From Cercozoa sp. M6MM (lineage: Eukaryota > Protista > Endomyxa: Ascetosporea): DNA of 64,000 nucleotides. The notes beneath the pieces were generated by a model. The model did no database searches. It was not told where the DNA came from and saw nothing but the letters and a program-made list of their open reading frames with translations. The DNA lies in the NCBI GenBank assembly GCA_040357565.1, contig JBDODJ010000037.1. One strand, 5' to 3'. The position numbers and the translations under genes were made by a program. Below, piece by piece: positions 1 through 24,077 of the stretch (its first letter is position 1; every line of letters starts with the position of its first letter).

Positions 1-36
<36 letters not shown>

Positions 37-131
37 ACAGGGCGGTAACTACGACAGGGCACGCGCGCTGACGATGCTGCTGCTGCTTGTAATCCGACGC
101 TCACCGTACCCTCCACTTATACCCTTTTGCT

Positions 132-169
<38 letters not shown>

Positions 170-288
170 CCCACCAACCACTTGGGAGGACAGGGATGCA
201 CCAGCAGCGCGTCGCGAATCTGTGGCAGCGTGACACGCGGCACGTCGACGCTGCGCAGAGCCTGTCCAAGCACATTATACATACGCAG

Positions 289-336
<48 letters not shown>

Positions 337-346
337 NNNNNNNNNN

Positions 347-397
<51 letters not shown>

Positions 398-2230
398 ACA
401 CACAAAAGGAGGAGGAAGGGAAATACCTCAACCAGAGGCATCGGACGAGTGTGCACTGTCACATGTCCCTGCGCCGACAGCAACTGGCACGTAGCCGCAC
501 CAGCGCAGTCGAAGAAAGCACCCAGCGCAGAGGCTACGCCACGGTAACATAGGAATAGGCAGATAGGCAGATACAGACCCACACGGAGGAAACTGACGCC
601 TGTACCTGGCACAAGAAAGCCGGGGGTCTTGGCGGCGCATGCGAGCACCCAAGCCTCCAGTCGCGCACTCCGACTCTATCGGGATGACATGGTAACAACA
701 GGAGAGGTAGATACTCGGTAAAAAAGATAGATAGGGATAGGGGGACACCTCGACAGGCAGCGCGTGCACGTGGCGATCGAACTCGTCAAAGCGCATGGCG
801 AGTCGCATGTCAAACTCGACCACAGGCGCTGCTCGGTGTCTCTGTTCAAACCAGATCTAGTGAACATAGCTGGTGCTATATAAGTGTGGCAGGAAGAAGG
901 ACAACACACGCAAGGGAACAAGGGACGCGTCGGGTACTCAGCGCGCCAGTCGACACCTTCAGAGACACCGGCGTCGTGGCACTCGGTGCTGCCTTCAGTC
1001 AGGTAGTGAACCTGCCCGTCACGGATCGCGTGCGCCGGTTCTCCGAGTGGCGACAGCACGCGATCACTCACCTCGTGACCGGTGACACCGACGGTGACAG
1101 TGCCCACACGCAGTACACCATCATACTCCTTGCTGTAAAACTGGGGAGTCTCGTCACTCACAGGGCGCACCTGACCGATCACGACGCGCAGGGTGCCCTG
1201 CGGGTGTTCGTGTGTGTCTGCACCAGCCACGTGCAACAACCGCGTATCAGTGACTGCGACTGAGGCAACTTATAACAAGCAAGGGGTACCGAGCTGTTCA
1301 TCGAACACGGTGGCTCCGTCGATCACGAGGCGACAGCGACCGCCGAGCGACAGTTCCTGTCCATTAGGGAGACGGGTACACGTGTATGGGGTACGTATGC
1401 GTATGTGTATGGAAGATACCACATGATGCCATCTGCGCAGTGGTAGTGGAGTGTGCGCGCGCACGTGTCCACAGTGACCGTGCAGTGCACCATCCGAGAC
1501 GCAGAGCTGCACGAGCGAGGCACGTGTCGGAGTGCCCACACGCAGCAGCGGCACGTCACCGGTCACGTGGCACCACAGGCGCAGGCTCACCTTGCCTGCC
1601 ACTGCCACACACACACACACACACACACTCATATTCACCAAGATGCAGGGTGGAAAGAGGAGGTACCAGACTGCACGTTGTGCATCTGCAGTGACGCATC
1701 GGGCAGGCGCAGTTCGGCGTGCGGCACCAGGTGCGCCACACTGCACGCCGACACGAGCTCGCGCAGGCGCGGCAGCGGGCAGCACTCGTGCAACACGGCG
1801 GACTCTTGTGGCGACACTTGCACCTGCGTGCAGTGTGCCGATTAGCACCAAATCACAACGAGTGTTGCTGAGTACCGAGACAAGACGCCGCAACAAGAGC
1901 CAGCGCAAGTGATCACGGTGCTGATCACTATCAGCGAGTGCATCGTCGTCGATGCCGTCAAGGGCAGTAACCGTAGTGTCAGTGGCGGTGTCGGGGCGGT
2001 GCAGCAGTGCCCAGTCGATCTGTCGCAGTAACTCAGCGACGGCACCGTGACGACACAGTTGTAGTGCGTTGTGCACGCGCTCGCCTTCCTATGTTTCAAA
2101 CCACATGGGCGACTACACAGATTGAGTGAGTATGATACACATAGGGAAAGCAGTCGCGTTAACAAGACCGTCCGTGTCTTGGCCGTCAATACGTGCCGTG
2201 CACACAGCGTAGACTCGCTATCATTCTGCA

Positions 2231-2280
<50 letters not shown>

Positions 2281-3610
2281 CACTTGCCAGCATACATAGG
2301 ACAGTCACATGCAATGTGTGCCTACCTCGGTGGTGCTACACAGTGTCAACAACGCCACCAGCGGCACTCCGTTGTGCACAGTATTGCCTTCTGCAGATTT
2401 CATGCGAATACAGCGGTACAGCAGGGGAGGGGAGGGGGACAGCACCCTCATCGCGCAGCAGTGCGAGCGACATTAGCGCCTGCACCAGGGTCTCACGTTC
2501 TGTCCTGACGCTCGTGGTAACCGCCCGCACTAGCGTCTTCTTTGTCAGCGCATCCTCTGCACAGGGACAGATTACAACAGCCTTCAAGCTTGTATAAATA
2601 TGCGCACGTGAAGTACCCAAGGCGACGCCATTGCGCGGGTGCTCGTTAGTCGAGATATCGAGCACGTCGAGCACTCTGAGTCGTATCTACAAACAGATGA
2701 GTAGTGTTGCGTGTTGATTGAGCATTTCAACACAAACGACTCAATGTACAGGTAGGTCGTTCTGCTGCGCAAAAAGTGCCGCCAGGAGCGAGACACCTGC
2801 GGCATCGGCGAAGGCGTCCTTGGCACGTTGTGACTGTTGCAGCGCCCGCTGCAGCACACCGAGCAGCGCGCGCAGTTGCTGCACACCCGAAGGTGGTTGT
2901 TCTGTCTCGGTGCTACACTGAGTGAGTGCCGTGAGAACACTGCGAATATGCGACGCGTTCGTGAGTCCGCACAGGAGTGATTTGGCCTGCACAGACACAC
3001 GCCCAAAATCCCTCCAGCAAAGATGGGCATGGAGTAGCATCAAAGTGGCAGGGAGTACAGCATTGTCGTGGGCAATGCGAGCCAGGGCACGCGTGTACAG
3101 TGGCGACCGCTGCAGCACCTGCACAGCGGAATCGCCGGCGACCTCCTCACTAAGCATGGCGGAGCGACTGCAGGCATCACCGACCAGAGCGAGCAGTGCG
3201 TTCCAAACCGTGCTTTCACCGTCATTTTCAGCATCACGATCAGCGTCATTTGGGTCAGGTGACGGTGGCGGCAGCAACATCAGCGCCTCCAGTACTCCCG
3301 ATTCCACAAGCAGCGACTGAGCGTGCGACAGGTGCGACACGAGCTGCAATGCCTGGCGCCACACGCATTGCACTTTTGGTGTCACGTGCGTACCACAAGC
3401 TGTCACCGCCCGAGTCAACGCTGTGCACCGCCGCACGCATACACCATCAGAAGCACAAGCAGGATGCAACATGCAGGACGCAGCGCAAAAGACAGTACCC
3501 TTTGAAAGCGCACGCAACTCTTGCAGCGGCCGAGCTTCTTCGGCGCCAAATCGGAGCAACTGCAGCAGCGACTGGCGCACTTCATCCTAATGCAGTGTAC
3601 ACATACACAA

Positions 3611-3649
<39 letters not shown>

Positions 3650-5728
3650 GATAGTGTTGGCACATTGAGAAAAGTACCTGTAGGGTGAAGAACTGTGCGC
3701 ACAGAACAGTCGTCATTTCGCGGAGAGCTGCCACGTTGCCCTGGTGCTGCAGAAGAGTGTCAGTCAATCGAGAGAGATAGAGAGGTAAAGAAAGCACCTG
3801 CGAGACGAATACGAGAAGTTCGTTGACAGCGGCATGCAGGAAGGTGTCGCTGCACACACGTATATATGTGAATATGGTGTAGAACGTAGGTGTACCGCTG
3901 TGCAGCGGCACTGCTAAGCAGCACACGCTGAAGCTGCAGCAGCAAGTCTCGGTTGCGAAGCAAAGGCGCATCGTCCTCACATGCCTCTCTGCGGCGCACA
4001 TTCTCCACACGTACAAGCACACTGTAACAGAGATACCGATTGTCCTCGTCGTCGTCGATGGGAACACAGGCGAACTGCAGTGCCTGCGAGAATACGGCAA
4101 CGGCAAGTTGTTCGTACTCTTCTTGCTGTTCTCGTTGCTGAGATTGACGGTGTCGCTCGGATGAGGAGTGTCCACCCAACGACAGTAGAGAACTCAACAG
4201 TGCACCTACATATAGATTAGCATCGACCGCAGAACTAGACAGTTGCACAAGGTTACCGATGTGCACAGGCAACTGGAAGTGAACGCAGCACTGCTGCGCT
4301 AGCGTGCCTTCGTTGTCGTCACGAATCGCCGTCTCCTGCAGGTGCGTGTACACTAGTGAGAATATGAGAGTCTCTCTTGAGACTGTACCTTGAGCAGCTG
4401 CAGCAAGCGGTGCAGCGTGTCGCACAGAAACGACGGTGGCAAGTGACGCGTTTGTGACAGCACGCGCGTGATTGCACCTGCCGGTAGCCATGCCGTACAC
4501 ATCACCAACAATTGCACCCACCAGGCTGCCCAGTACCAAGCATCTGCTGGCGTCGCATGCAGCGTCGTAGCAGAGCGCTACGCGCATGCGCTCCGCTGTC
4601 CAAAAGCGCTTGCAGCACTTGTTGCGACACAGCCTGTGTCTCGCCTGTTCCGTGAACACGCAAAAACACGTGCATGCGCAGACATGTGATACAGGAATGT
4701 GTGACAGGAATATACGCTGCCAGTCGTTCACAGGGATCCGCAGAGCGCGCTGCAGGTCACCAGTGCGAGTAACTGCATCGACACAGCACTACACACAAGC
4801 ACATGGTACGTGCATCAATGGTGTGACAGTGGCGGCGCCAGACGAATACCTTGAAGGGCAGGAGAGCTCGAAGCAAACGAAGCAGCACGTGGCGCGCGCG
4901 ACGGCACGGTTCCGCTCGCTGAAGTCCGTGCCGTCGCACGACGTCCTGTTGCAGTGCTTGCGCCTGTTCATGAGGAACGCACACATGCAGGAACCGAATG
5001 GGTGCCATGAATCCGCAAATACCATAAGTACGCGCAGAAGAAGAGGCACAAGGCCCTGGACGGCTTCGGCGAGTGCTTCAGTTTGCACCAGTTCTGTTGA
5101 AAGCGGTAGGTATACAATGGTACATTGTGCAAACAGATATGATATGAGTACCAGCGATGAAGAGCATCAGTGCACCGTCCTCGCGCTGGGACATGAAAGG
5201 TTTCGAGGCCAAAACCACCTGCACAGACAGGAAGTATCGAGGAAGGCAAAGGGCAGATGGAGGAATACAAAATGTGAGCTACCTCGGAAAGGGTGGAGTC
5301 ATCCGCCGACTCCAGCTGAGCAGAAAGCAATCTCGTCATCAGTCGTAGCACTAAAGTTTAACAGCCAAAGGATATGAGCTACTTGCATAGATAAACAGAC
5401 ACAACGCTATAAGTTACATTCGACGGTGTCGTCCAACATGGCACCTCCGTTGCATTCGTCGAGGTGGCATCTTAACTGTCAACACACGCACAAAGCAATC
5501 AACACAACCTGTGTCCATGACGTTAAAATAGTTTGTGTACCTGCTCGCACAGAAAGTGATCAACAAAGCTCGCGCTGGACACAATGCCATCGCCTCGTTG
5601 CAGCAGTGTGTCGAACTGACAGATCAAAATGTCGTCAACGCGCGACAACAAGAATTCTTCAAAGGTACCTGCCCCCGAAGGGAATGTTGCGTGCGCCGGC
5701 GCGTCCACCGCTGCTTCAGAAACTGCAT
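1..5728 (-). CDS. Large multi-exon helical scaffold with a ConA/LamG-like domain; probably the N-terminal half of a BEACH-domain protein (WDFY3/LvsA/SPIRRIG-like). Runs off the window start
   Basis: Spliced minus-strand exons from MQFLKQRW (ATG 5728). Leu-rich helical segments include AKDAFADAAGVSLLAALF, which resembles the KDxFxxxGG helix of WDFY3-type proteins. LamG-like motifs SLRLWCHV, PLRRWHHVV and CRLVIDG lie at ~1280-1600. The BEACH/WD40 end itself is not in the window. Confidence 0.5.
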
Positions 5729-6497
5729 ATTGGCGGCGGCCCTGCAAACGAAAAAAAAACAACATTGTGGTGGAACTAGTTGTGTCGTAAAATGACCTAC
5801 CGCACACAATGCAAGTGCAGGCGAGCGCCACAGGTGCGTCAGCTTGTGCTTACTCGGATTATATCCTATTAGGCTGATCAGCACGTTGCTAGTGTAGTCC
5901 AATGGCACTCAAAAAAAAAAATAGTACAGCAAACTAGTAGTTTTCCTAAAAAACCGATCGCGCGATCAATGTGTGGCCTTTTGGCACTCTGACCTTGGAT
6001 CAGTCTGAGTTTTTCCAGCTTTCTCGATACTCACAAGCAACTATCTCTCAAGTCATGGCGCCAGGAGGGCAAACCACCCTGCTAACCCAAATTAAATGCC
6101 GCTGGTGTCGGGAACTTGGGATTTTGAACTGTACGGTTGGTACACCTTGGAAGAGTATTAAAGTTGTTGACTCCGATTGTACAGTACTTGTTCTACTTCG
6201 ACTGTTAAGTCAGTCGACTGTTTAAAAAAAAGCTGATCCAACAGTGCACGCGTGTTGTGAAAACTGTCCACTGATCGCAACATTTTTTTAAAAAAGTGGG
6301 ACATCAAGCCCGTGCAGCATCCGACACTTTCAGCTGTTCTCAATAGCGTACTGACATTGTTCTGAGCTACTTTGCGCTCCGAAAAGGCGCGTGGATCAGG
6401 ACGTGTGAACAGATTCCCCAGGTCGTCTGCTGTGCGTCTAACTCACTTCAGGGACGGTCTAGTGCTGCACTAGTGCCGTAGCAGACCAGGGGTCGCG

Positions 6498-9400
6498 ATG
6501 TGGCGACGCTTTGTTCTTGGACTGGCTGCCCTGTCGGGTGTGTTTCTTTTCTGGTGGGTGACGTTTTTTTTTTCTATGTGCTTGGTGGCCGATCAGGCAT
6601 TGGCCAGGCAAGCCCAGAGGCGTCGCTGCTCGGTTTTACCCTTTCGTACGACTCGTACACTGATGGATCCGACACGGTGTACGATGTCAAGATTGATTCG
6701 GCGTACTCGTCGAGTTCCACAAGTGACTTCTCGGCCGGCTCGCTCATCCATGACCTGGCGCGTGTCAAGCTCGGCGACAAAACCGTCGATATGATCGGCA
6801 ACGTGCAGAACACAGGTGGACCGATCATCACTGCGTCGCAGCGCGTCTCGCTCACGACCGATGCATCAGAGTTCTCCGTACCGCATCATTCGCGATCTTT
6901 AGACCCCCCCCCCATTTGCTCTTTGTGTAGGTTGCAGCAGAGGTGACGGCAGTCATCAACGACGAGCTCAGTTTCGTCGCAGCCTCGCAGATTGGTTTCG
7001 ACTCCACCTCTGGCAGCAAGGGCTCGTCGGCGCGCGCCGCCTTCGTGCCGTACTTGTCGTTCAGCAAGTTGGAGTTGCCGGTGTGGCCGGCCGATGAAAC
7101 CACGGTGGTGTCTGACTGTGTGGCCAAGTCGCTCAGCAGTGCGATCACGGTGTCGTACAATGGCGGTCTGGGAACCTGCGACATCGTCAGCACTCTTGCC
7201 GCTGGTGTGAGCGAGTTCTTCGTTTTCGAGGTGCAGACGCAGCGCCGTCTCGGCAACACGCTGGTCGACACGCAGGCTCCGCTCATCTATGCCATGACGG
7301 TGATTGGTGGCTCAGGCACTGTGTCGCCGCAGGTCACATCCTTCTCGGGTGGCGCTCCGTTCGGCTCGCACTACGAGATTGACTTGGCCAGCCAGCTGTC
7401 CGTGCCTGGCAGTCAACTCGTGGCCACCGGTTTGCCGGACGGCTCGTCGCTCTCTGCTTCCGGTGTGCTGACGCTGCGTGCTGACGCCGGTGACGACAAG
7501 TTTGTTGTGTGTGCCTTCACGGGCACGCCCTCGAACCTGGCGTACAGCGGCTGCTACAACGTCGACCCGGACGCCACGGAGCTCACGACACTGACGGCTA
7601 CGATTGCGGATTTTTCGCGCACGTTCGGCGATTTTGCCGGTGTTAAGGTGTGTTGTACAACCGTATTGTACTGGCTCTGTTTTAAAATCATTGTTGTTGT
7701 TTCGCAGTCTAAGGCGCACGCTTCGTGGACGTCGGACGGCACGCTGCCGAGTTGGGCGTCTATCAGCAACCGCCTGGCCGTTGCCGGTCCCGCCGCGCAC
7801 TGTGTCGACGTTCAAGGCCACCTTGACAGTGGCAAGTGCTACTTCCGCAACTCGGGTGTCAACGCTGCCTGGCTTCGCGCCACGCATCCGATCACGTTCT
7901 TCGCTGAGGTGCCTTGTTGCTCATGTCTCTGTTGTAACTGCATCTGGAGCTGGGGTGGTGAAGTGCAATTATTTTTGTTTGTTGCTTTGTTGCGCAGGGC
8001 GACAAATTGGTTTTCCGTGCCGATCCGTTTTACCCGATCGATTATCAGATGCTCGGCAACGAATTCGCTGCTGACAACGTGTACTACGAGCACAACGGCT
8101 ACTTCTCCGTCTACTTGGAGGAGACACTTGATGCCACTGCTGGCGACGTTGTCTACTTCAAGGCCAACGGCTACCTTTTGGTAACACACGCACACGGAGA
8201 CCATAAAATGTGTTCCTTTTTGGGGTTGCAATACTGATACATGCTGTGCAGGTCGAGCTCGTCCTTGACGGCGGCTCGACGACCACGCTCTCCTTTGACG
8301 AGGCTGGTGGCGTCCGCAGCTCGACACTTAGCACGGGCATCTACACGGTCAAGATCTACTACCTGCATGCCACTGACGCCTACGAGCCGAAGCTGGCCAT
8401 CACGCTGCCGAACAAGCGCGAGTGCGACGTTTCCACAGCGCCGAAGGCGTTCGACTACCCGGCGACGCAGGCCTTTAACGACGGCACACTCGCCAAGACG
8501 GCCGAGGCTTCGCTTGGTGCGTCAACGGCCTCTCTCGTGCCAGCTTCTGTGACGAACTCGTACCAGGCCTTCGGTGTTGCGTACAAGAGCCTGGTGCCTC
8601 TGAGCGGTGGCTTCGTCACGCAGTTCAAGGTGAAACAGCCGACGGCGCTCGGCAGTGACTACCCGGGCTTTGTCCTGCGCATTTCGGACGACGATCCGGC
8701 AACGTTTGGCGGTGCGGCTTTCTTTGGCTACGCCGGTGAGGCTACTTCGGCCAACCAGCTCGCCATTGAGTTTGACTACGAGGTCAACAACGACGCGAGT
8801 GCTGGTGACAACCAGAACGACCCGAACTACCACCACATCTCGATTCACGCGTTTGGCAAGATTTCCGAGGACGATTCGGGCCGCTTCATCTCGCAGACGG
8901 GCGATGCTTCTAACAACAAGCTCATCGATTCTGTTCAGGTGAGGCTTTGCATTGGTTGTGCGCGCTCGTGTATGAGTGTGTTGTGTTGTTGTGTGTGTAT
9001 GCTTGTGTGCTGTGTATATCTATCTGTTTTTCGTAGATCCCAGGTGCGTTCGACTCGACTTCTGCGCTCAGCAGTGGTATCTACTACCGCGTAACTTACA
9101 AGCCGTCACCCGAGACGCTCCTCATCGAAGCGAGCACCAACGGTGCCTCTTTCACTACCATCATGGTATGTTCTTGCCTTTCTCCCACTGTTGAAATGTT
9201 CGAACGTCCCGTTTTTTCGCAGGAGCGACAGTTCGTGGCCACGCGTTCGCTGGTGGACAACATCATCAAGTCGGACACTGCTTACTTTGGCCTCATGACC
9301 GGTCCGATGCGCCCGGCGTCGAACTCGCCGACGACGCGTGCGGTCACCGTGGAGGAGTGGTTTGTGCGCACACCCGAGGTGTCACCCAACGATGTGTCCG

Positions 9401-12400
9401 TCGTCTCGTCTGCCGAGCAGGCCGTGGCCTCGCTGCTGCCGATCCCGGCCGTGTGGAAGGCTCGCGATTCTTGCGGCGCGGACGTTGGTGTGCTCGCCAC
9501 GCCATTTACCATGTCGACGGCGTCACTGCTGTGCTCGTTTGACGGCTCTGCCACCTGTACGACGACGACGTCGGCCGGTGAGATGAGCGCTCCGGGTGCT
9601 CGCTTCATTTCTCAGGCGCAATCTGGCGGTACCGTTGCTGTGTTTCTGTGCGGCTGCGTTTGTGGCATGTGTGAGTTGGACTTGAGCAGGTACCTCTGGT
9701 GTGCTGCGAACTTTCGCCACTGTTGGTGGCAGCTTCATTCCGCGCCCGATGGTCACGCGTGTGTCGGCTGCGTGGGCTTCCTCGCTTACGTCGGTTGAGG
9801 TTCTCGGCACCAACTACGCCGGTGACACTGTGACAGTCAACGTGCGACCGATCGACTCGTTCGGAAACGCCGTGAAGTACCCGAGCGACAAGATCAAGCT
9901 AGTCGCTATCTCCGGTCTCAGTGGCACGCCGAGCGCGCTCACCTGGGACAACTCAAACAAGAAGCACGTCGGCACGCTCGTTCCCATTGAGGTAGTTGTT
10001 TCTAAGATCATTGTGCTCGCTGGGGGCTCTATTGATTGTACGTTTAACGTTTTAGGCTCGCAACTACGTGTTTGAGGCGTACGTGAACACGTTCGAGGAC
10101 ATCAGTGTTGTGTCTTTGCCGGTCGCCATCGACGCTAAGGATCACGCCGATTCGCAGGTCACTGTGAACCCGCGTATCACGAGCGTCAAGGCTGGTGCCA
10201 CCGTCACGTTCACATACACGCTGCGCGACCAGTTTGGAAACCTGCTGACGGTGCAGCCGACTGGCACGGTACTCTACACTGGTTGTCACTCTCGAGCGTT
10301 AATATGTGTTTTTGTGCGTGTTTGATACAGTTTAAACTGTTCAACGCTGGTGCCGCGTGCACGACGACGCCGAGCACGCCTTACAAGCTTGTGTGTGATT
10401 ACTCGGACACGCAGGCGGTGACGGCGTCGCCACGCGATATGGAGCTGTTCTACGAAGGCACGAAGATGACTCTGCCGGTAAACGGCCAGGCGCAGCTCTC
10501 GGTGACAGCGAGCGACGAGACGTCGTTTCCGCACTCGCGTCTAAAGATCGAGGATACGCTCATGAGCAAGACGTCACCGGTCACGCAGATCACTGCTGGT
10601 GACGCGCTCATTTTCTCGGTACCTCCTTGCATGTGTGTGTGTGTGTGTGTGTGTGTGCCTTGCATTCTGATAATTTCCAGGTGGAGTGTCATGACCCGTA
10701 CGACAACATTCGCACGTCGACAACAGCGATGAGCATCACATACGACATCATGTTCGGCTCGACCAAGATTGTGGACGCTCGTAGTGCCTCTGTTATCTGT
10801 CCGTTCGATGTGACGATTGCTTCCGGCGTGCTGACGACGGTGGACGCCGAAGAACTGTCCGTCGTGGTGACGGCAGCGCCGGGGAACACCATCGGCCAGA
10901 TCGGCAGTCACGTGAGCAACAATGAGGCCTTCCCGGTCAGCATCGTGCACGGTGACTTTGACCGTACGGTGTCGACGCGCACCTTCTTAACTCCTGGCAC
11001 GATCGATGCTGGCACGGAGGTGCGCGTGCAGCTGTTTTTGAAGGACGCCTATGGCAATGCCGTTCTGCCGGCGTCGTCCAACGGCATACAGACCGGCGAT
11101 ATCGCGGTGGACTGGCGATCAGAGAGTCTCGCCGCTGTCGCCTCGGTCGAGAACGCTGCCACGGGTGAGTACCTTGTGAAGTTCACGCCGACGGTGGCCA
11201 CCTACGATCCAGCCGACCTGTCCGTGCTCGTCAACGGACTGCCGGTGCAAGACGCGCTCACTCTCACGGTGCTCCCAGACCAGTCAGCGATCGCGCTGCC
11301 GTTGCCGTCGAACCTGTACGGCGGCAGTGCGCTCGTGACCGTGCGCAAGGATCTCGAGTCGTCGTTCTGGGCCACGGCCAAGGACGAGCACGGCAACATT
11401 CTCGATTTGCAGTCGCGCAATCAGCTGGAGGCGCGTGCCTACATTGACAGCGGCTTGGGTGCGTGCCAGAAGTGGATGGATTCAAGCACTGCCCCCGACC
11501 TCACCTTGACCATCGGCGTGGTCGATCTCAACGTCGTTGCCAACGAGCGCGGTGTTTGGCAGACTAAGTTCACGATTCCGGACGGCTGCGTCTCGGGCAC
11601 GTCGTTCGAGATAATCTTGCACGTGGCTGCAGCTGGTTTCGACTGGAGCACGGTTGCCGATCCCACCGACACGAACGGTGCCACCTTCGCGATGTCGGCC
11701 ACTCCGGACTTCATTGACGCCGACTTCAAGTACCCGGCGCGTGTCGTGTTGTCTTCGTTTGATTTCACCGCCGGCACCGAGTTCTCGATCGATGTGCGCG
11801 ATTACGATCCGCGTGTATGTTTTTGTTTTGTTTCTTCGCATGTGTACTGTGTGCGTATCGAGGAATTGGGTGCGTAGGTGAACATCGACACGTGCGAAAA
11901 CAACGGCAATCCGGAAAGTTTCGCCATCATGGACAACTGCAAGATTGATGGCACCCGACAGGACTGCCAGGACGGTCAGTTCTCGAATGACTACATTGTG
12001 AACTGGACGCCGTCGTCGACCTGTACGCAGCTGTCGCACGGAAAACTCACACCGGTCGGTACGCTTTCCGAGTGCGAATCCTACTCGGAAACAAACGTCA
12101 ACACGCCTCCCACTGTTTTGGCTGATTGCAACGGTGTCGTCCTTTCTTGTTGTTTGTCTTGGTGTTGTAACATGCTTAACGTTGGCAGTTGCCTTGACAA
12201 CGACGTACACGTCATCGACGGCCGTGGACAACCAGAACGGTCTGTACAACCTGCCGTTCGCAGCCACCAAGGCCGGTATCTACCGCCTGTCGGTCAGCAA
12301 CCTGGCCGAGGAGATCATGTTCCCGAACTACTACCATTGCGACGGCTGCACTGCCGGCACTGTGCCGTACAACTCGTACCTGTGCGCTGGCTACGACTGC

Positions 12401-15400
12401 ATTAGCGACCCCAACTTTGCCATCACCAACATTGTCGTGAAGCCGGCTGCGGTATTTTGCCTGGTGAGCCTGTGTGTTGTGTATTTCTGTGTGTTGTGCA
12501 GGCCAGCGCAGCTGCTTCGGCTCTGGATTGGAAGTTCGACAACGATGGCACGCCAATTGGCGCCAATAACATTGAGGCTGGCCGTGCGATCCGCCTGGAG
12601 GTCACGGCGCGTGACACGTACGGCAACCTCATTGTTGCACGTCAGGTGAATGTCACTGTCGACGCGCGCACCGTTGCCGGAAACGTCCAGATCCCGGCGA
12701 CGGCGGCCTTGACTGATGCCAATACCGGCACGGTCACGGTGACGCTCACGCCGACCAAGGCGTCTGCTTCGGATGGCTTGCCTGCCTTCACGGCCACGGT
12801 GACGCTCGCCGACGGTGCCAGTTCAAGTTCGCGTAGCTTCTCGTTTGTCGTGCAGCCCACGACTTTGGACTCGGCGAACAGCGTCGTGACGTTTCCGCAG
12901 ACGGTGACCGCCGGCGAAGAGCTCGTGTTCTCTGTCGAGCCGCGCGACACGTACAACAACAAGCTGTGGTCTCGCCCAGCCGAGTTCGATGGTCTCGACT
13001 TCACAACGGCCGAGTTCCCGATGTGCGCTGACATCAGCGGGCCAGTTGTCCTCGCGGCGGAGGTTCGGGACTACGCCACCACCACGCGCAAGTCGACGTT
13101 CAAATGCACTGCCAAGGTCGCTGCCGATCCGGCGAGCCCTGTCCGCACCGATGTTGTCGTGCGCGACGGTGCCTCTGTCTACGGCACTGGTCAGGTCGCT
13201 GTGTTCGCTGCCGCCACGGACCCGAAGCAGTGCGACGGCTCGCACAACATCAACGGTCAATCGTCGATCTGCGATGTCGCCTCGCTTGGACAGTACAACG
13301 CGCAGGACTTGTCGGTGACCACGCAGACGTTCACGTTCACGGACACGGACGAGTTCGACAACGTGCGCGGCTTGAACTGCAAGGATGCCGATCAGTTTAC
13401 CGCATGTGCCTCTGGAACGTCCTTCACGCTGACTCTAGCGCTGCCTGCCACCGTATCTTTATCTTTGCATTTGTTTGTACTGTGTGTTTAACCGCATCAA
13501 TTCTTTATCTGCGTGTTATGTGTGTGTGTTGACAGGGTGCGACGATTGTAAGCTCGGCGACGCAGACCGCTACGCCTGGCGACTGGCAGTTCGAAGTGGG
13601 TCAGGACAGTGGCAAGCCTCTCGAGACTGGCCTCTGGGACGTGTCACTCAGTCTTGCTGACGGTACGTCCTTCCGTCGTGCCAATGGCAGCGATCTCAAG
13701 ATGGGATTCGAGGTGTTCGCCGGTGACGTGCACGTGTCGGTCACTGGCATCACGTCAGCTGTGATCGAATCGTCGCTCGCTGGCATCATCGCGGGTGACA
13801 AGGCCTCTCTCACGGTCAAGCTTATCGACGAGTGGGGCAACCCGATCGAGGCGCCTGTCGACAAGGTCGAGTTCGAGGTCTACATGTACCTGCACAAGGA
13901 GGGTGCTTCGCCGTACCGCTGCACTGGCGACGTGCCGCCGGAGCTCGGTGCCACCAACTGGACGGCACCGGGTGCGGGTGACATCCAGTACGACGCTTTG
14001 AACAAGCGGTACAAGATCGACTTTGGCGTGCAGCTCGCCAGTGTCTTTGGTGAGCACTACGTCGAGGTGCGCGCGCGTCTCAACTGTGGCGCCAGCAGTC
14101 CGTACTGCCCGGCAGCGCTCGACGCCATGCAGCCCCTGCGTGCCGGCACGTGCTTCAGTCGCCTCCGTGTGACTGCAGGCGCAGTCGACTACGCTTCTGG
14201 CGTGTCCGTCGCTTCTGACTGGGCACTTGAGCAGATGCCGATTCTTAAGACGCAGACGCTAAAGCTCACGGTTTACGACGCTTTCGGCAACGTGTAAGTG
14301 GCCTATTGCTGCGCTTGTACTTGTGGTTTTTGTATGGTTTTTGTACCCTGTAGTGCGCGCCCGGATCCTGACTGTGGTGCGTCGTTACGTCTGGGTGAAA
14401 CAGGCTGTGGCGCCGGTCTTGATGACACTCTCTGTGACATTCATGGTGCCCGCTTGACGCAGCACTGGTGTTCCCAGGCGGCGGATTGCATCGGCTCCTA
14501 CACGCCCGACTACGACGAGTCGCTCGTGCTGTTCCACTGTGATGGCAACGAGCTCGCGCTGCAGGTGCGCGGCGTGACGCCCGTGACTGATGCTGACCGT
14601 CGCTTCACCACGCTCATCTTCAGCAACACCGGACGCACGCAGAAGGTGAACTTCCTTGGCGCTGAGCCGCGCGCGATCACGTTCGTGGCGGGTTCGATCT
14701 TCGCGCCGAAGACGGAGGTGGTGTGTCCCGACGTGGGCACGGCACGTGGCAAGTGTGTCATGGACGCCGATACGAGCTTCTTGAACACGTCGATGGCGTA
14801 CGCCGGTCGCGTTGCGCACTTTAACATGACTATGCGCGACAAGAACGAGCGCACGGTGTTCGACAAGCAGCACGTTTTCGCCCCGATGATCGGTACGCAG
14901 GACCGCGCCGCTGTCTTGTCCGACGCCGCTCGTGGCACAGCCGATATGGTGCAACTCGCGCTCGAGATGAACGAGCAGCGTCTGTCGGACGGTTCGGTGC
15001 GCACGCGCGACTCGCAGTCGACGCTGTACTTCATGCCGCTGTGGCCGGGTGTGCTGTCGATGAACTTCAAGATCACGCAAGAGGACGGCGAGCAGGAGGA
15101 GAACGATCCCAGCGAGGCACTCATGCGGCATGTCGCTGGCACGGGTCAGGGGTCGATCGCTGTGCAGCCGGAGCTGTGCACGGCCACACTCAACGCCACA
15201 AATGCTACTGTCTACGACATTGTCCCGCGCGACTATGTGCGCTGCGTCATTAGCGACAAGTGCGTTGCCGACATCGCCGAGTGTGACAATGCTGAGGATA
15301 AGTCATTTGCCAACATTGCGTCGTGCGTGCAGACCGGCTTCCCCGAATGTCCGTCTCATCCGGTATGCCACTTGTCTTGTAAAACAAATATGTGTGTTGT

Positions 15401-18400
15401 TAGACAAATATGTGTGTTAGGGCCTTTGCGTCCCGGACGGCCTGTGCCCAGAGCCGACGGGTGCTGCGGATGCTTCGCTCTCGCTCAACTGCAAGGACGT
15501 CGCAAGCCACTCGCCCACTCATGCGGCCACAAAGCTTGCTATCGACCTGCACGTCGCGTCGTACGACGACTGTCCGTCGCGTGTGATCTGCCCGGTGGGT
15601 GCCAAGCTGTGTGGCGACGGTCTCACGTGCGTCGGAAACCTCGACACGTGCCCGTTCAACGCGTTCGTCGACGTGATCAAGGCTGACATGCTCTCCAAGG
15701 GCTACAAGGCGTGTGCTGGTGGTCGTTTCGTGCTGCGCAGCGAGGACTGCCCGAGCATGGTGACGTGCGCCGTCAATGAGGTGCTGTGTGGTTCCAACAA
15801 CGAGTGCATCGAGTACGTTGACGCCCTCGCCAGTGGTCAATACAGCGCCACCGCTCTCAAGTGCCAGGAGGTACTGTGCGCGCATTGTCTTGTTAGATGT
15901 ACGTACCTGTATCTGTTTGTTATGTGTGCGTAGATGCCGCGCTACGCCAACGTGACTGACGGCATGTGCCACCTGCCGCCTTCGTCTGGTGGTGTGTCGT
16001 CGGATTGGACGCAAGGCATTGTTTGTCCCACGGGTGAGTGCCGACTCTCGTTCGACCAGTGTCCGACCCTTTCGACGTGCGCACGTGGCGAAACCAAGGT
16101 AGCCCCCCCCCCTCGTTATTGTAGTATGATTTGTGTATTTGCGCAGTGCGCCGATGGCAACTGCGTCGTTGGCGGTCTTGCGGCTTGTGAGAACAGCAAT
16201 GCGATGGCCTGTCTGCCTGGCCAGTACAAGTGCAGCAACGGCATGTGCGCCGGTAACTCGCTGCTGTGCCCGGCCGCCACGTTGTGTCCGGCCAACACGG
16301 TCAAATGCGACGACGGCTCGTGTGCGTCGTCGGTGCGCCAGTGCCCGCTTGCGAGCGAGTACGTGTGCGAGAACGGCGAGTTCCGCTGTCCGCACTCGAA
16401 CCAGTGCGTGAGCTCTCTCGCCGAGTGTGCCGTGCAGGCTTCGTGTCCGTTTGAGCGCCCTGTGCGCTGTGCCGACGGTGCGTGCCGTGCCACTGCCGCC
16501 GAGTGCGCTGCGCAGACAGGTGCGCTTTCTCCTTTTGGCTTGTGTGTGTGGCATGCGTCATACACCTATTCACCCATGTTTCTTGAAAACAGGTAGCTGC
16601 CCGGCCAAGGCGCCGCTCCGCTGCTCTGATGGCTCGTGCCGCACGTCGTTTGCTCAGTGCTCGGCTCTGCCCGCGTGTATTTTTCTGCCTTGTGTACTTG
16701 TGTGGACTGGTGTATAGCGAATTTGCATAGGCCCTGAGGACATGAGTTTCCGTTGCCCGGATGGCTCTTGCCGTCCCGACTTCAACATGTGCATGCAGGA
16801 GGCCGCTCCCGAGGAGACTGGCAGCTGCGCCGCCGACGAAGTGCGATGCGCCACCGGCCACTGCGCGAAGTCGTTGGGTCTGTGCCCGCAGGTGCCCACT
16901 TGCCCGCCTGGCCGCACGCTGTGCTACGACATGTCGTGCCGCTCGCCCGAGAACTGCGCCCGTGACAACCTGAACGAGCAGCGTCCGACGGTGCGCGACC
17001 TGCAGTACCTGCCCGTGTTGCTGAGCAAGCGCGAGTATGTCGTGTGCCCCAACGGTGTGTCTGACTCTTGGTGTTCGGCTTGACTGGCGATTGTCTACAT
17101 GTGGGATGTTATAGGCATTTCGCGTCGCAAGAAACTTGCGGACTGCCCAACTGGCATGGTGTGCCCGAAGGACCGCCCTGTGCTGTGCTTCGACAACACG
17201 TGTCGTGCATCGTTCGAGGAGTGTCCCACTCTGGATGAGGGCAAGGCCGAGTGCGAACTCGAGCCGGCCGGTGAGTCGCTCAAGTTCGCTCGCTGTCCCG
17301 ATGGCTCGTGTGCGTCGACACGCTCGTTCCGTTGCACGGAGGGCGTGACTTGTCGTCCTGACGAGTTCCTGTGCTCTGATAACACGTGTCGCAAGTCGCC
17401 TGAGGATTGTGTGGCGCCACCGGCCTGCCCGGAGGGCACCTTCTTCTGCGCCGGTACGGGTACCTGTCTCAGTGATCGCCGTGGCTGCCAGGACGTGTAC
17501 GTGTCGGCGCCCGTCAGCGCCGAGGCGCCTGTGCGCTGCGCCAACGGAGACTCGGTCGCTTCTGTCGCTGAGTGCCCGAGCAGTGTGTCAACTGCGATCT
17601 CTGGTTCGGGTAACCCGCATTGGGGCTGCCCGCGTCCGCAGGACTTCCGCTGTCCCGATGGTACCTCCTGTCTCTCTGTGTTTGGTGTGCTGCAGAGTCG
17701 AAATTTGACTGCTGCTTAGGCTCGTGCTCGCACCTGGGTTGCGAAGGCCGCGACCGCCAGTGCAGCTCGCTGTCGGCGGAGCAGCTAGATAAGGTGGCTG
17801 CAATCTTCGAGGATGGTGGTCTGTCGGCTGATGCACAGCGTCTCGCCGTACGAAAGCTGCTTCCCGGTGTGGACGTGCCGCAATTCCCGTTCACGTGTGG
17901 CAACGGTGCGTGTGCGCCGCGTCCGTCGGAGTGTGCGCGATCCAACGGCTGTCCGTTTGACCGCCCGGTGCGTTGTGGCAATGGCGCGTGTGTTAGCGAC
18001 TCGGGCAAGTGCGCCAACCACCTTGGCGTGGACCAGTCGGACAGCAACCGCTGCGTGTGTCACAAGGAGCCGGGTGCCGAGTTGAAGATCGGCGCTGCCG
18101 ATGACATCATGGAGATCCTGAACGAGCTCGCCGACGGCGACTGCACGCAGCGTTGTGAGAACGGCATGTGCGTGCCGCCCGGCCACGCGACGCTCAAGTG
18201 CTCCGCGCTGCCGCGCTGTCCGGCCTGGCAGCCCGTGCGCTGCTGGAACGGCCTGTGCGTGGAGACGTCGGCGTTGTGCCCGCTCGCCTTTGACTCCAAC
18301 GCCGACGAGCAGTGCAAGGACCCGGCCAAGCCTGTGGCTTGCGCTGACGGTACCTGTCGCGCCAGTGGTGAGCTGTGCGGTTCGATCTCGCAGTGTCCAC

Positions 18401-21368
18401 TCAGAATCAAGGTAGGCACCTTCTGCTGTGTCGGCTTGTCACCATGAGTTATTGTGACTGTATTGGTTATGCATAGAGTGGCACCAAGGCTACCAAGACG
18501 TACCGATGCCCGGACGGCCACTGCACCGCAGATCTTTCGGATTGTGGCGTGTCTGAATACGGCACGTGCGATCCGGACTCGGTGCGCAATAAGGTGTGCC
18601 CGCCCGGCCTGCTGGTCGATACGCTGCGTAGCTGCGTGCCTGGCAGTAGCTCGTCGTGCATCCAGGTGCACGGCGGCATGTGCGTGGCCGACCTGTCCGA
18701 CTGTCTGAAGATTGAGAACTCATGTCCTCTGCGTCTGCCGGAGAAGGTATGTCATGACAGTTTTCCGTTTATGTCTGTGTGCCTGTCTGTGCGATGCATT
18801 TTGTGTAGCTTGAGAGCGGTGAATGCGCCAAGAATTCGACTTCGCCGCCCATTATCGACGTTGGTAGCGCCAACGGCTGCGACGACGGCTACGTGCGCTG
18901 TCCGTTCGGCGAGTGTGTTCCGACTGGTCAGCTCACGCAGTGCTTAGCGCCGGTACCAAGCTTCTCGGCTTCGCCTGGCGACGGCGAGACGGTGTGCGTC
19001 AACAGCGGCAACGTGACGAGCCTGGACTCCTACGGCGACGAGTGCCTCACAGTGCAGAACTGTCCGGTCGACAAGCCGTTCCTCTGCGCCGACCAGAGTG
19101 GCAACTCGGGCCAGCGCGTGTGCAAGCAGTACCCGAGTAGTGTCTCTGGTGTGCGTCTGCCCGGTGTGCTGTCGGCCATCACGAGCAGTCACGTCTGTGA
19201 CGTGGCGGTGGTGTGCGACGAGGCGCGCCCGTTCCGCTGCGCTGACGGCACGTGCGCCGTGTCGTCCGAGTTCTGCTCTGCCATGGTGTGCCCGTTCGGT
19301 ACGGTGCGTCACCCGACGACGCTTCAGTGCGTGCCGCAGAGTGAGGTGACGTTGCTCGCCACGGGCGACGAGATGCCGGTGTGCCCGCCCGGTGCGCCTG
19401 TCATGTGCAGCAACGGTCTCTGTGTCAGCGACGGTCTCGAATGCCCGGTAAATGCCGTTTGTTCTCCCTGTTACACACGTCGTCTGTTGTTGACTCGTTG
19501 ATTTGCGTGTCGCACGCAGTCGGAGCAGCAGCTCGCTCGCCTGCGCGGTGGTTTGACATGCGCGGCCGATCAAGTGCGCTGTGTCGACGGCTACTGCGCC
19601 AATAACAACGCCGAGTGCGTGAGTCGCACTGATCGCGGCATTCGCAAGAATCGCTCGTCGCCGGAGGTAACCTTGGTCTTCGTGTGTCTGTCTGTGACGT
19701 GTGTCTGTGATTCATTACTGTACCGACTGCGACTGGTGTATGTGCTTGCAGGCAACGGCCCGTGCTGGCTTCTGCCCGTACATCTGCAGCGACGGCATGT
19801 GCGTCGAGCACTCGTCGCTCTGTCCGATGACGGAGGCGTGCCCGGCTTCGCGTCCGCTGCGCTGTCCCGACGGCGCGTGCGTCGCCGTTGATTCCTTGAC
19901 GGGCAACTCCGACGTGAGCAGTCTCATCAGCTCCCTGTGTGCCAACAATCAGCCGACCGACTCGTGCTCGGGTGCCTTCCTCTGTGTGTGTGACTTGTGT
20001 GACTTGTGTGATGCCACTGTCGTCATGTAGGTGATGAGGTGCGCTGTGCCCATGACGGCGTGTGCCGCACGGTGGCCGAGTGCAAGGAGATTGGCTCGTT
20101 CGGCTGCTCAGGCAGCACGGCGCTGCAGTGCCCGGACGGCACGTGCGCTGCCAACACGGAGGAGTGCTTCGTGGGCGGTGCCCTGAAGTCGCGCGAGCGC
20201 TGGCTGCGCTACGAGAAGTCCGAGTCGGTGACGGTGTCGCTGCCGGTGTCAGCCGACGCCTCCTTTAGCGCCGCCGAGCGCGACGGCGAGTCGGTGCTCC
20301 GCATCGCGGCCGTGAGCGGCTCGCTGCAGCAGCAGGACGGCTCGGTGTCGCAGGCGCAGTTCTTCGTGCGCCCGGTGCCGACGTCGGATCTGAAGCCGTA
20401 CTACTCGCTGGTGCACTTCTCGCGCCGCGTGGACCTCGGCGACGTCACGACGCTCGAGCAGAAGGTGGACGCGATCGAGCTGCCGTTTGACCGCTCGGTG
20501 ATGTCGGTGCCGTTCCAGTGCTTTGTCGAGGGCAGCACGGTGCAGCCCTTCGCTGTGCCGCTGACTGTGCGCGCCGTGATCGACCGTGACATTGTTGCGT
20601 CGCAGGTGTGTTGTCTCGTGACTGCACTGACGACATGTTGGTGTATGTGTCGGTGTTGTTGCTGCAGGGTGTTCTTAAGTACTCGGATGAGCTCGTTCAT
20701 GACGAGGATGTGTGTCTGGCTCGACTGGACGAGGCTCGTGGCACGTGGGTGTGCGAGTCCTTCGGCGTCGCCAAGGTCACGGGCGACACAGTGGAGTCGC
20801 AGCTCTCGACGTGCCGCGGTGAGCAGGGCGCCGTCTTTGCCTTTGTGTTCGCTCCCAAGCCGATCGACGTTGAGCTCGATCTGGGCAGCAACTGGTGGGG
20901 TGACAACTGGGGCTGGTTCCTCATGATCATTCTGATCCCGGTGCTCGTCCTCGGCGTGCTGGGCTACTGCATCTTCCGCTGCAGTCGCTACCGCGGCAAG
21001 TACCACCGCGAGCGTGATGAGGTCGAGGACGCCAACGCGCAACTTGACGAGATCGTCGAAGGTGACGAAGAAGGCATCGCTCACTTTGGTCAGCTCGGTC
21101 CCGGCACACACGTGCAGTCGAACCCGCTGGCGGCAGCGCAGCTTGACCCGCGCGAGGCTGAACTTGAAGAGGAGCGTAAGCGCATGAAGGGTATTGCTAC
21201 CTGTGCGTCTGTGTTTGTGTCAAACATACCTTGACACGTGTAGATGAGCTTGAGCGTCAACGACAAGAGACGCGATTGGCGCAGCAAGACATCGAGCTCG
21301 CCGACGACAGCATGTTCGAGCACCGTGTTGAGCTAGGCGGCGCGCAGATGGACCGTCGAAACGTCTAG
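6498..21368 (+). CDS. Giant type I transmembrane cell-surface protein (~4,300 aa, ~30 introns): signal peptide, fibro-slime/PA14-like domain, L-type lectin, filamin/Ig-like repeats, Cys-rich repeats, ZU5/GAIN-like domain, TM helix, cytoplasmic tail
   Basis: MWRRFVLGLAALSG signal peptide at 6498. Consecutive long + ORFs are joined by GT-AG introns (e.g. 6538-6596 and 21191-21243, phase checked). TM helix WGWFLMIILIPVLVLGVLGYCIF at ~20908-20976. Stop TAG at 21366-21368. Strong GC3 codon bias throughout. Confidence 0.9.
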
Positions 21369-21554: not shown

Positions 21555-23193
21555 TTAACCAAAAAAACGATCAGCGTACGTCGGTAGAAATCGAATTAAT
21601 GATGCACTTGTGCGTGGCCGGACGTAGCTTAGTGGCAAGAGACGAGAAGAAATCACCAAACGGCGAGCAGGTCGTGAAGCATACTGCCTATCCGTGCGAA
21701 CGTGACGGCTTGAATTTCGTTGGACTCGTTGGACTGCGCAGACCAAAACAGGACACTTTGAGTGAGAACTGGAGGGAGTAGCAGCGAGTACGGCAGCGCG
21801 TCGACGATCGTCGCCACTGATTGGTGTGTCCGAGGGAATACTCGGAGGATCCGATGGCCTATGCACGCACGCCATACAGTGTACGCACAAATGTGAACAT
21901 GCATAGACAGCATACGACGAAGGCGAGGACGTTGACTTGTTGTCTGTCATCAACATGCCCATGACGCCTCGTGCAATCACACCTGTGCGCGTGCGCGTTG
22001 CTAAGACATGCTTAAATTTGCGGACGGAGTTGGACAGATACCAAGAAGAATGCCGATTTTCTGTTTTCGTGGCACCGAAGGTGCCCACACCCAGATTCTG
22101 CACAAGCGTGAGCATTCAGAAACAGTGGATGCAACAGTTACAAAGAAAAAGTGTGTGCTTGGTACAGTCCGAAAATGCCAAGGGCAAAACCGATCGCGAA
22201 CCCGCACTGCTCACACATAGAGAAGACCATGAGGCGGCACAAATGAGAAAGGTTGCATATCAGTACAGCAACGAGCGCCGCTGATGAAGGTTCGTGCTCT
22301 GGCGAGGCCGTCAGCACTGTCTGCGCACACGACAAGCACTCACCCATAATAAAGCAGTACACCCAAGTGCGAAAAAAGAAAGCACCTGTGCCTCCATATC
22401 AAGTTGCGCCGCAAGTCGACGAGCCACTTGCTCGTCTTGATCCGTTTCATCATCGTCGGCCTACACTCAGCAACAAAGCGATGCAGGCACATCGAGAAGT
22501 CATCCAACGCAGGGCAGGTAATACCGGCTGTGGCTGCGTTGGTTCCTGCTGCTGCTGCTGCTGGAGCGAGCCAGGGGCGCCCACGGAGGCGTGCAGTGTC
22601 ACGCTCATCTTGTTTGTGATGTTAACATTCTCGTCGTTACTAGTGCTACTGATGCACATATCACGCAGGACGTCGCTGTCCGGGAGTACGCGACCTTGTC
22701 TGTATTTGTACAGAGAATTTGTACGTCTCTTTGCAAGAGCAAGCCAGACTATACCGAATGAGTCGTACGCGGCGTCGCTGCGACAGTTCTGCCGCAAAGA
22801 AATGCTCGCGAACTTCTGCCACCTGCGAACAGGAAGAAACACTATTCGTCCACACACGAGTACACGCAACGGTGAGCACAACTTGCCGAGGCAGAGGCCG
22901 GGAACTTGGCGCTCATTTCATCGTGCTGTGGCCTCAGAACGCGTACCTCTACTTCGGCTGCTTGGAATTAAAAACATTGAACCCAAAAATCGAGTGTACG
23001 CGATGAAAAAGCGGGACACGGGACAGTATTTACATGGTTGCTGTGTTAATTCAACATCGCGATCCTCAATCTCGACAATTCGCTCATAGCGAGCGGTCTG
23101 GCCCATTTGGCGAGTCACACGCACTGCAGGCACGCGCGAGCGCACACTTGATGGCAGCAGAACTCTTCCTTTGTCAATCGACTCTGGACGCAT
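21555..23193 (-). CDS. Ubiquitin-like domain plus C-terminal membrane hairpin protein (Dsc3/DUF2407/TMUB-like); 3' end approximate
   Basis: Spliced VAEVREHFFAAELSQRRRVRLIR|QGRVLPDSDVLRDM...VTLHASV matches the UBL RLIxxGRxL pattern. The C-terminal GFAIGFALGIFGL-IWVWAPSVPRKQKIGILLG resembles the Dsc3 C-terminal TM motif. Confidence 0.55.
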
Positions 23194-23338: not shown

Positions 23339-24077
23339 ATGTCAGTGCCCAACGTGCCCGACACCTCGAAAGCCAGCACTGGTGAGACCAGCGAGCAGGT
23401 TCCAGAAATAATAATAGAAGAGAAGATAAGACAGAGTGCTGCCCTCTTAAAAATCAAGGTAAAAAGAAACACAGGTTAAGAATGTTGTTCCTTAAATCTA
23501 GGCAGAACACCATCGCAAAGTTTGACCCGGAGCAATCCGGGATCGTCCCCGCGAGTGATGTGGGGAGCTTTCTCCGCTGCCTTGGGATGAACCCATCAAA
23601 GGTTGATATACGTCATGAGGTACTGCCTTCGCTTCGTGAGTCAAGTGCTTCGACGCTCATTGAAACCGAGAGACTTGCCACGGAGGCTTTGGGCTTGCTC
23701 GAGCAAGAACGGTTCCAGCTTACTCCCCCCGAGGGTTTGATAGACGCGTTTCGAATTATCGACCAAGACGATTTAGGGTACATCCCCGAAAAACAGGTAC
23801 CTTTACTCGTAGCTAGCTCACTATGCTTTTCTGGTACACACTGTCAAGCAAGTTTACTGCGTTGGCATTCAGCTGGTCAAGCTGCTGTGCGCAGGCGAGG
23901 ATGGATTCGATGACGATGAAGTTATCGAATTCCTCGCTGCCGCGTATCTTATCTTGTTCTATCGATATTCACGTGCATTTGTAAAGTGAAGGCAGGCGCA
24001 GCAATGACGGCAACATCTACTACAAAGAATACGTGAGCGACTGCTTCCCTCGCCACCGTTTTTGCAACGGCAGTTGA
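23339..24077 (+). CDS. EFCAB2: Dynein regulatory complex subunit 8 (EF-hand, calmodulin-like)
   Basis: LKIK|NTIAKFDPEQSGIVPASDVGSFLRCLGMNPS...PEGLIDAFRIIDQDDLGYI...FDDDEVIEFLAAA...GNIYYKEY aligns with the EFCAB2/DRC8 pattern (IGTIIRSLGCCPT, PEDVLLRAFEVLD, FSQEEMEEMLSAA, INYKDY). Confidence 0.75.

Follow-up and report, generated by a model that had tools for sequence, protein, structure and literature searches.

Lectin-type heads on long stalks are already familiar from yeasts, bacteria, Dictyostelium, and Acanthamoeba. One such protein, Acanthamoeba L8HDD6, combines a legume lectin, filamin repeats, and a transmembrane (TM) helix, and is enriched on and induced by beta-1,3-glucan (PMC10880599). 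Here, a gene at positions 6498–21368 (+ strand) of a 64,000-nucleotide (nt) stretch of DNA, the window, is described and compared with these systems. The window corresponds to C37 among the contigs of a eukaryotic assembly of 23.6 Mb. Its source is Cercozoa sp. M6MM, which is placed in Apofilosa (Rhizaria) and whose draft genome measures 23.67 Mb at 52.8% GC (PMC11069148). A recent description names the strain Lemnamoeba sinaloensis and reports an unusual abundance of AC:GT microsatellites in the genome (PMC13746701). The strain was obtained from fish gills and is culturable (PMC11069148, PMC13746701). The gene encodes a predicted protein of 4,316 amino acids (aa), probably a giant, stalked, type I plasma-membrane receptor for adhesion or glycan recognition.

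L8HDD6 resembles the window protein in its signal peptide, N-terminal legume-type lectin with an Mn/Ca site, filamin/immunoglobulin (Ig)-like repeats, and C-terminal TM helix. It too lies on the surface of an amoeba and is implicated in recognizing a glycan, beta-1,3-glucan. By its published description, it is much smaller and lacks a PA14-like domain, a Cys-rich array, and a juxtamembrane domain, and it belongs to Amoebozoa, a group distant from Rhizaria. Myxococcus TraA and Dictyostelium PsiA/DicA1 carry a PA14 head on a stalk of Cys-rich repeats and act in surface recognition or adhesion, and yeast flocculins also place a PA14 head on a stalk (PMC3325183). Like the window protein, these have at the N-terminus a lectin-like domain of the PA14 type, carried by a long stalk of repeats. 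They have no L-type lectin and no Ig array, and they use a sorting tag, a glycosylphosphatidylinositol anchor, or secretion where the window protein has a TM helix and tail. The Cys repeats of TraA and PsiA are also unlike those of the window protein, on which TIGR04201 and Dicty_CTDC gave no match. The PA14-like domain of the window protein has diverged strongly and appears to lack the acidic calcium motif. In Fibrobacter, fibro-slime proteins bind cellulose at the cell surface (PMC4668043).

L-type lectins also sit at the tip of long repeat stalks in Staphylococcus epidermidis Aap, S. aureus SraP, and Lactococcus YwfG. Their structures align with the window lectin at Z scores of 9.0–9.9, but these proteins are bacterial and wall-anchored, have unrelated stalk repeats, and are 10–16% identical to the window sequence. 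ERGIC-53, VIP36, and Emp47p are type I proteins with an L-type lectin ectodomain (Z 10.0–10.6), as in the window protein, but are ~350–510 aa long, reside in the secretory pathway, and have short sorting tails; a stalk of Ig or Cys-rich type is absent. GEX2 and FUS1 are single-pass proteins with filamin-like Ig arrays, and Ig_GEX2_N scores over its cutoff in the window protein; at ~1,000 aa they are about a quarter of its size, with an Ig-like array only and no lectin head or Cys array (PMC13601591).

Gene structure

Between 6.5 and 21.4 kb, stop-free blocks with high GC content at third codon positions (GC3) form a chain on the + strand, separated by short T/G-rich gaps. A gene finder of our own, using dynamic programming on codon usage and learned splice-site matrices, joined them into a single + strand open reading frame (ORF) of ~4,327 aa with its stop ending at 21368. 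Exon 8252–8938, used as query in an exhaustive HMMER search, retrieved a public record at 100% identity over the exon, "MAG: hypothetical protein MHM6MM_002033 [Cercozoa sp. M6MM]" (P0001 below). The two models have identical starts and stops and differ in four splice choices only. A map of 31 exons from 6498 to 21368 gives P0001 exactly, with a coding sequence (CDS) GC3 of 0.77. All 30 introns are GT-AG, keep the frame, and measure 48–98 nt (median, 61.5 nt). None is roomy enough for an intergenic region.

Both gene models are computational, and the 4,316-aa product could in principle be an artifact that fuses two or more neighboring genes. This is highly improbable: all 30 gaps are short, canonical, and in frame, no internal signal peptide or TM helix was found in the product, and a paralog on another contig (C85) has the same domain order. 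The evidence that 6498–21368 is one gene is indirect but strong, and the two models agree. A distant first exon favored by our gene finder was set aside as implausible; starting instead from the ATG at 6498, with an intron of 59 nt after it, yields a textbook signal peptide and is the better choice. Contamination was rejected, since both introns and AC:GT repeats match the M6MM amoeba. Microsatellites of the (TG)n/(GT)n type lie within introns of the gene, for example at 10619–10680 and 10269–10330, and translate as CVCVCV. Such runs occur in several of its introns because the M6MM genome is AC:GT-rich (PMC13746701).

A first-pass annotation, made by reading the DNA, had proposed a single spliced ORF of ~4,300 aa at this locus, and the agreement of our model with the public one, together with the 48- to 98-nt introns, confirms it. 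Its coordinates for the PA14-like, lectin, and Cys-rich segments were near ours (7822–8410, 8438–9384, and 15312–20173, respectively). A single giant type I membrane protein with a lectin, Ig repeats, Cys array, TM helix, and tail is retained from that annotation; its ZU5/GAIN-like domain and its inference of strong expression from high GC3 are not supported, and its PA14 domain is recognized through the paralog only. Its term "undescribed system" goes too far: a public annotation of the gene, as hypothetical, already exists, and smaller precedents for the design are known, such as Acanthamoeba L8HDD6. The features of the gene are as follows.

6498–21368, + strand: whole gene; 31 exons, 30 introns, CDS of 12,951 nt, 4,316 aa, equal to MHM6MM_002033 (P0001)
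6498–6613, + strand: signal peptide, aa 1–19, MWRRFVLGLAALSGIGQAS, split by the intron at 6538–6596 (direct reading)
6614–7821, + strand: N-terminal region, aa 20–384, Ser/Thr-rich; no recognized family
7822–8410, + strand: divergent PA14/fibro-slime-like domain, aa ~385–527 (alignment to a C85 exon)
8438–9384, + strand: L-type (legume-like) lectin, aa ~537–800 (sequence, metal ligands E647, D649, D664, and H669, and fold)
9725–11547, + strand: Ig-like (filamin/invasin/Big_1-type) repeats 1–5 (DxxGN motif scan and self-built hidden Markov model [HMM])
11548–12424, + strand: insert of ~250 aa separating Ig repeat 5 from repeat 6, with 11 Cys; no family
12425–14477, + strand: Ig-like repeats 6–10 (Pfam and repeat HMM)
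14478–15311, + strand: pre-Cys region, aa 2312–2589; no family, kept in the C85 paralog
15312–20173, + strand: Cys-rich array, aa 2590–3957, with 154 Cys and ~38 four-Cys modules (pattern and spacing counts)
20174–20862, + strand: membrane-proximal domain, aa 3958–4166 (~210 aa); within the genome, common to the C85 paralog only
20908–20976, + strand: single TM helix, WGWFLMIILIPVLVLGVLGYCIF (Kyte-Doolittle scan)
20977–21368, + strand: cytoplasmic tail of 112 aa plus stop, with an intron at 21191–21243 (direct reading)

Lectin domain

The presence of an L-type lectin domain (PF00139, PF18483, PF03388) with canonical metal-ligand residues is well supported by sequence matches, invariant alignment columns, and a predicted fold, in line with the first-pass annotation. 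With exon 8252–8938 as query, phmmer was run against 1.84 billion representative sequences, EukProt transcriptomes among them, and returned 12 non-self matches with E values of 1.9e-7 to 9e-4. Lectin_legB or Lectin_L-type_dom lay under the matched stretch in 9 of the 10 matches scanned. In the resulting alignment of 13 sequences, E173, D175, D190, P191, and H195 of the exon, which correspond to E647, D649, D664, P665, and H669 of P0001, are invariant. The lectin hallmarks G-F, G-F-x-F, G-Y, A-x-E-F-D, D-P, and H are invariant or almost so. We take the E-x-D ... D-P ... H positions to be the Mn/Ca ligands of legume lectins.

The exon, which holds part of the domain, was modeled with AlphaFold2 (AF2), and predicted local distance difference test (pLDDT) values in the core are 70–81. 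Foldseek with this model gave legume lectins as the top 40 or more hits (best E value, 1.6e-4). Ranks 1–12 from VIA-align were all L-type lectin domains, with Z scores of 9.0–10.6 against 7.9 for the next fold, and include peanut lectin, ERGIC-53, VIP36, Emp47p, domains from Methanocaldococcus jannaschii and Entamoeba, Aap, SraP, and YwfG. The Pfam lectin HMM did not reach an E value of ≤1 on the window protein, a PDB sequence search with P0001 gave no match at E ≤1, and Atlas leads to lectin clusters were sub-threshold (0.77). The lectin of the C85 paralog scored 37.9 bits with Lectin_legB, over the cutoff of 26.3. A role as an endoplasmic reticulum/Golgi cargo receptor, as for ERGIC-53, was rejected on grounds of size, stalk, and tail.

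The closest lectin relative is a 419-aa protein from the Logan assemblies (P0002; 39% identity, E value of 1.9e-7), laid out as an L-type lectin, a Cys-containing region, and a TM helix. A third Lectin_legB match in the genome, at G000:C1:209533-209796 (minus strand; L036), was sub-threshold at 24.2 bits.

N-terminus and PA14-like segment

The N-terminus, MWRRFVLGLAALSGIGQA, reads as a textbook, cleavable-looking signal peptide and is the sole one in the product. It had been called in the first-pass annotation, and its start is shared with the public model. The Ser/Thr-rich region at aa 20–384 had no Pfam or NCBIfam match and no BLAST match among exons of the C85 paralog.

A fibro-slime/PA14-like domain, also called from the DNA alone, is supported indirectly, by homology to the C85 paralog, with no direct profile match on the window protein. 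Residues 389–492 of P0001 align colinearly with a C85 exon (L021:4362-4829) at 30% identity (E value, 7e-6). That exon matches TIGR02148 (Fibro_Slime) at 8.4e-7 (29.4 bits, under the cutoff of 45) and PF07691 (PA14) at 0.002 (18.4 bits, under the cutoff of 24). PA14 and Fibro_Slime profiles gave no match on P0001 at E ≤1 and none at the gene in a six-frame genome search. The acidic GDD-type motif, which we take to be the Ca/sugar-binding site of the PA14 family, is replaced by ANGY when the window segment FKANGYLLVELVLDGG is set against C85 AASGDLWVFLDGELVVDLGG and the family consensus. The acidic site is absent from some PA14 domains (PMC3325183).

Ig-like repeats

Ten repeats of ~90–100 aa, each with DxxGN, were detected at aa 894–2311 by motif scan and a self-built HMM. 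The Pfam Ig families tested were PF00630, PF23616, PF02369, and PF09134. On P0001, Ig_GEX2_N scored 54.8 bits (1.1e-14; cutoff, 27), with its best stretch at aa 1721–1787, and Filamin scored 28.7 bits (cutoff, 26.9); Invasin_D3 and Big_1 were below cutoff. The exon of repeats 1–5 gave weak Filamin and Ig_GEX2_N matches. The Ig-type repeats of the first-pass annotation are thus real, but 10 rather than ~11 are detectable, and the block spans 9725–14477 rather than 9800–15150. The insert between repeats 5 and 6 was matched neither by the repeat HMM nor by Pfam. The pre-Cys region that follows the repeats had no Pfam match, and P0001 residues 2419–2618 match C85 exon 19 (BLASTP E value, 1.8e-5).

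With Ig_GEX2_N as the best Pfam family, the protein could be an amoeba-amoeba recognition molecule acting in self/non-self recognition, cell fusion, or gamete adhesion, in the manner of GEX2/FUS1, TraA, or Flo. We consider this rather improbable. GEX2 and FUS1 are single-pass gamete adhesion proteins with Ig arrays (PMC13601591), and TraA mediates kin recognition by a PA14 head and a Cys-rich stalk (PMC3325183). However, the Ig_GEX2_N match extends over one or two repeats out of ten, a stretch also recognized by Filamin, Big_1, and Invasin_D3, which argues for a generic Ig subtype and not for GEX2 orthology. GEX2 and FUS1 also have neither lectin heads nor Cys arrays.

Cys-rich array

The 154 Cys at 15312–20173 bear out the Cys-rich array of ~5 kb that the first-pass annotation had described. 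The module has the form C-x6-7-C-x2-G-x-C-x6-C, frequently CPxxxPxRCxDGxC. Only 13 regular three-module windows were counted in the array. Pfam searches of the array exons and P0001 gave no family for the module, which also fills large parts of the C85 gene and of a third gene on contig C118.

The spacing of the module equals that of the first four cysteines of the LDL-receptor class A (LDLa) pattern. LDLa domains also have Cys 5 and 6 and an acidic calcium cage, whereas the window modules have neither and no DxSDE. Ldl_recept_a (PF00057) gave no match on P0001 and a single marginal match to a C85 module (E value, 0.053); no bona fide LDLa was found in this genome.

A very long, repetitive, disulfide- and Ser/Thr-rich ectodomain would also suit a structural role in the coat or glycocalyx, as a membrane-anchored scaffold that ties together, by its lectin head, glycans on the surface of the amoeba itself and plays no part in sensing or uptake. 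Proteins with Cys-rich repeats are a typical constituent of extracellular matrix (PMC3325183), and the tail carries no recognized signaling motif. This explanation is nevertheless unlikely: lectin-tipped stalked proteins of known function are adhesins or receptors, and the segments best kept between the paralogs are the tail and the TM juxtamembrane region (51% identity), which argues for a cytoplasmic partner.

Membrane-proximal domain, transmembrane helix, and tail

The membrane-proximal domain is mostly Cys-poor and ends in a final strand, AVFAFVFAP, 15 residues ahead of the TM helix. It aligned with its C85 counterpart at 35% identity (E value, 1.2e-15) and, in a second comparison, at 29% identity (E value, 6e-26). 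A ZU5/GAIN-like domain, proposed here by the first-pass annotation, was not supported by profile or PDB sequence searches. Exon pieces of the window, C85, and C118 genes had no Pfam match even at E ≤10, and a profile of the domain had no match among PDB sequences. The GPS profile (PF01825) had no match at E ≤1 in the window gene, C85, or C118, and scored over cutoff at three loci elsewhere in this genome. No CxC-HL-T/S or HFS cleavage motif was found at the expected place, which reads RGEQG-AVFAFVF. A genome search with ZU5 (PF00791) gave no match, and its controls gave none either. The complete domain was modeled with AF2 from the single-exon C85 copy at a pLDDT of 37, which is unusable. Atlas searches with the C-terminal exon gave sub-threshold leads to unnamed bacterial clusters. 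The membrane-proximal region of the C118 gene, with its CSVLHFSSW motif, was considered as a homolog, was not borne out by profile search, and was not used for the ZU5 question.

The three GPS loci are C64:20835-20945 (+), C188:9636-9752 (−), and C23:53919-54026 (+) (L029–L031). They possibly belong to adhesion G-protein-coupled receptor-like or polycystin-like proteins.

The TM helix and charged tail are as first annotated, the helix being the sole hydrophobic one and the tail 112 aa long where ~110 had been given. The helix is the only segment over 1.8 in the whole product and lies 112 residues from the C-terminus. Its exon is 51% identical to the C85 TM exon. By the membrane, the tail has a basic segment, RCSRYRGKYHRER; a helix of acidic character follows, and NPL and a charged, helical segment with ERQRQE are also present. 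It matches the C85 tail at E values of 3.6e-17 and 2.6e-10, and the same features recur there.

Related genes

The C85 paralog, at G000:C85:1216-17285 (minus strand; L019 and L021), encodes ~4,700 aa in our own model, in which the 5′ end is uncertain. The two genes share the order PA14-like domain, lectin, Ig repeats, Cys array, juxtamembrane domain, TM helix, and tail, and their PA14-like segments, pre-Cys regions, Cys arrays, juxtamembrane domains, TM exons, and tails are colinear. Fibro-slime/PA14 and Lectin_legB features are better conserved in C85 than in the window gene. Identity over the TM helix and tail is 34–51%. Heads and Ig arrays are highly diverged and the stalk base and tail conserved, which is the pattern expected of recognition molecules and a point in favor of a self/non-self or gamete function.

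The C118 gene, at ~7058–15554 (minus strand; L020 and L022), has its own signal peptide, MRFVPCLLLVGGLQSLIQA, and a GC3 of ~0.5. It encodes an N-terminal repeat, EVLCFNPNTGxRECxxPxxC, four-Cys modules, CSVLHFSSW ahead of a stalk rich in Thr and Pro, and a TM helix. Neither an Ig array nor a lectin is present, and a profile search detected no homology between its membrane-proximal region and that of the window gene. Profile searches found the juxtamembrane domain, TM helix, and tail within the genome in the window gene and C85 only. We infer a small, lineage-private family made up of the window gene, one full colinear paralog on C85, and the shorter C118 gene, which shares the Cys modules.

The head exon has no close relative among the 1.84 billion representatives. 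A search for similar-length homologs of the whole of P0001 returned self only; this search was word-based and also missed the C85 paralog, so that it is a weak negative. The same search with residues 3960–4316 and with one Cys-rich exon again gave self only, as similarly weak negatives. The same domain order was not found outside this genome in searches of limited reach. The first-pass view that the architecture is unlike any described protein is thus kept for the domain order and not for the design, which smaller precedents share.

Predicted function

The window protein probably acts as a stalked adhesion or glycan-recognition receptor of L. sinaloensis. Among the points in favor of this reading are stalked precedents of like design (L8HDD6, TraA/PsiA, and Aap/SraP). 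The PA14-like and L-type lectin head would bind glycans on bacteria, prey, substrate, or host mucus, and, with its modules in an extended state, the protein would hold this head ~100 nm or farther above the membrane. A rigid stalk of 10 Ig domains and ~38 four-Cys modules would present the head past the cell coat. The conserved tail could then couple engagement to the cortex for adhesion, crawling, or phagocytic uptake.

Several observations weigh against a glycan receptor. Direct Pfam matches of PA14 and lectin profiles on the window protein are both wanting. Loop A of the lectin is altered, reading DYPGF where relatives have A-D/E-G-F, and the lectin may therefore be unable to bind sugar. 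The same may apply to the PA14-like domain, in which the acidic motif appears to be missing. The tail has no recognized signaling or cytoskeletal motif, with NPL in place of NPxY. About 1,100 aa (the N-terminal region, insert, pre-Cys region, and juxtamembrane domain) have no family.

As predicted from sequence, the parts are mostly known adhesion modules; the combination is new, and two modules, the four-Cys module and the ~210-aa juxtamembrane domain, are unclassified. A more specific proposal is that the genes form a family specific to Apofilosa or Rhizaria, in which the PA14-like and lectin head reads prey or substrate glycans and the new modules transmit engagement, perhaps force, to the tail. 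We regard this as a long shot. If it is true, Rhizaria would gain what is, as far as is known, their first receptor for phagocytosis or adhesion to be defined in molecular terms, and the two modules would be new folds.

We know of no characterized receptor for prey, substrate, or host recognition in rhizarian amoebae. A complete candidate with a lectin head, a paralog with a diverged head, and a conserved tail is a starting point for work on adhesion and phagocytosis in a poorly studied supergroup. The four-Cys module and the juxtamembrane domain are flagged for structural work.

Flanking sequence

Weak matches to EF-hand families (EF-hand_6, 3.3e-5) were obtained for an ORF at 23482–23913 (+ strand). 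The remaining large ORF pieces on either side of the gene, at 1–5400 and 21555–23089, matched no Pfam family. Over window positions 1–6000, where no family was recognized, the + strand has A>T, an AT skew the reverse of the one in the gene. This suggests that upstream of the receptor gene, and head to head with it, lies at least one gene on the minus strand.

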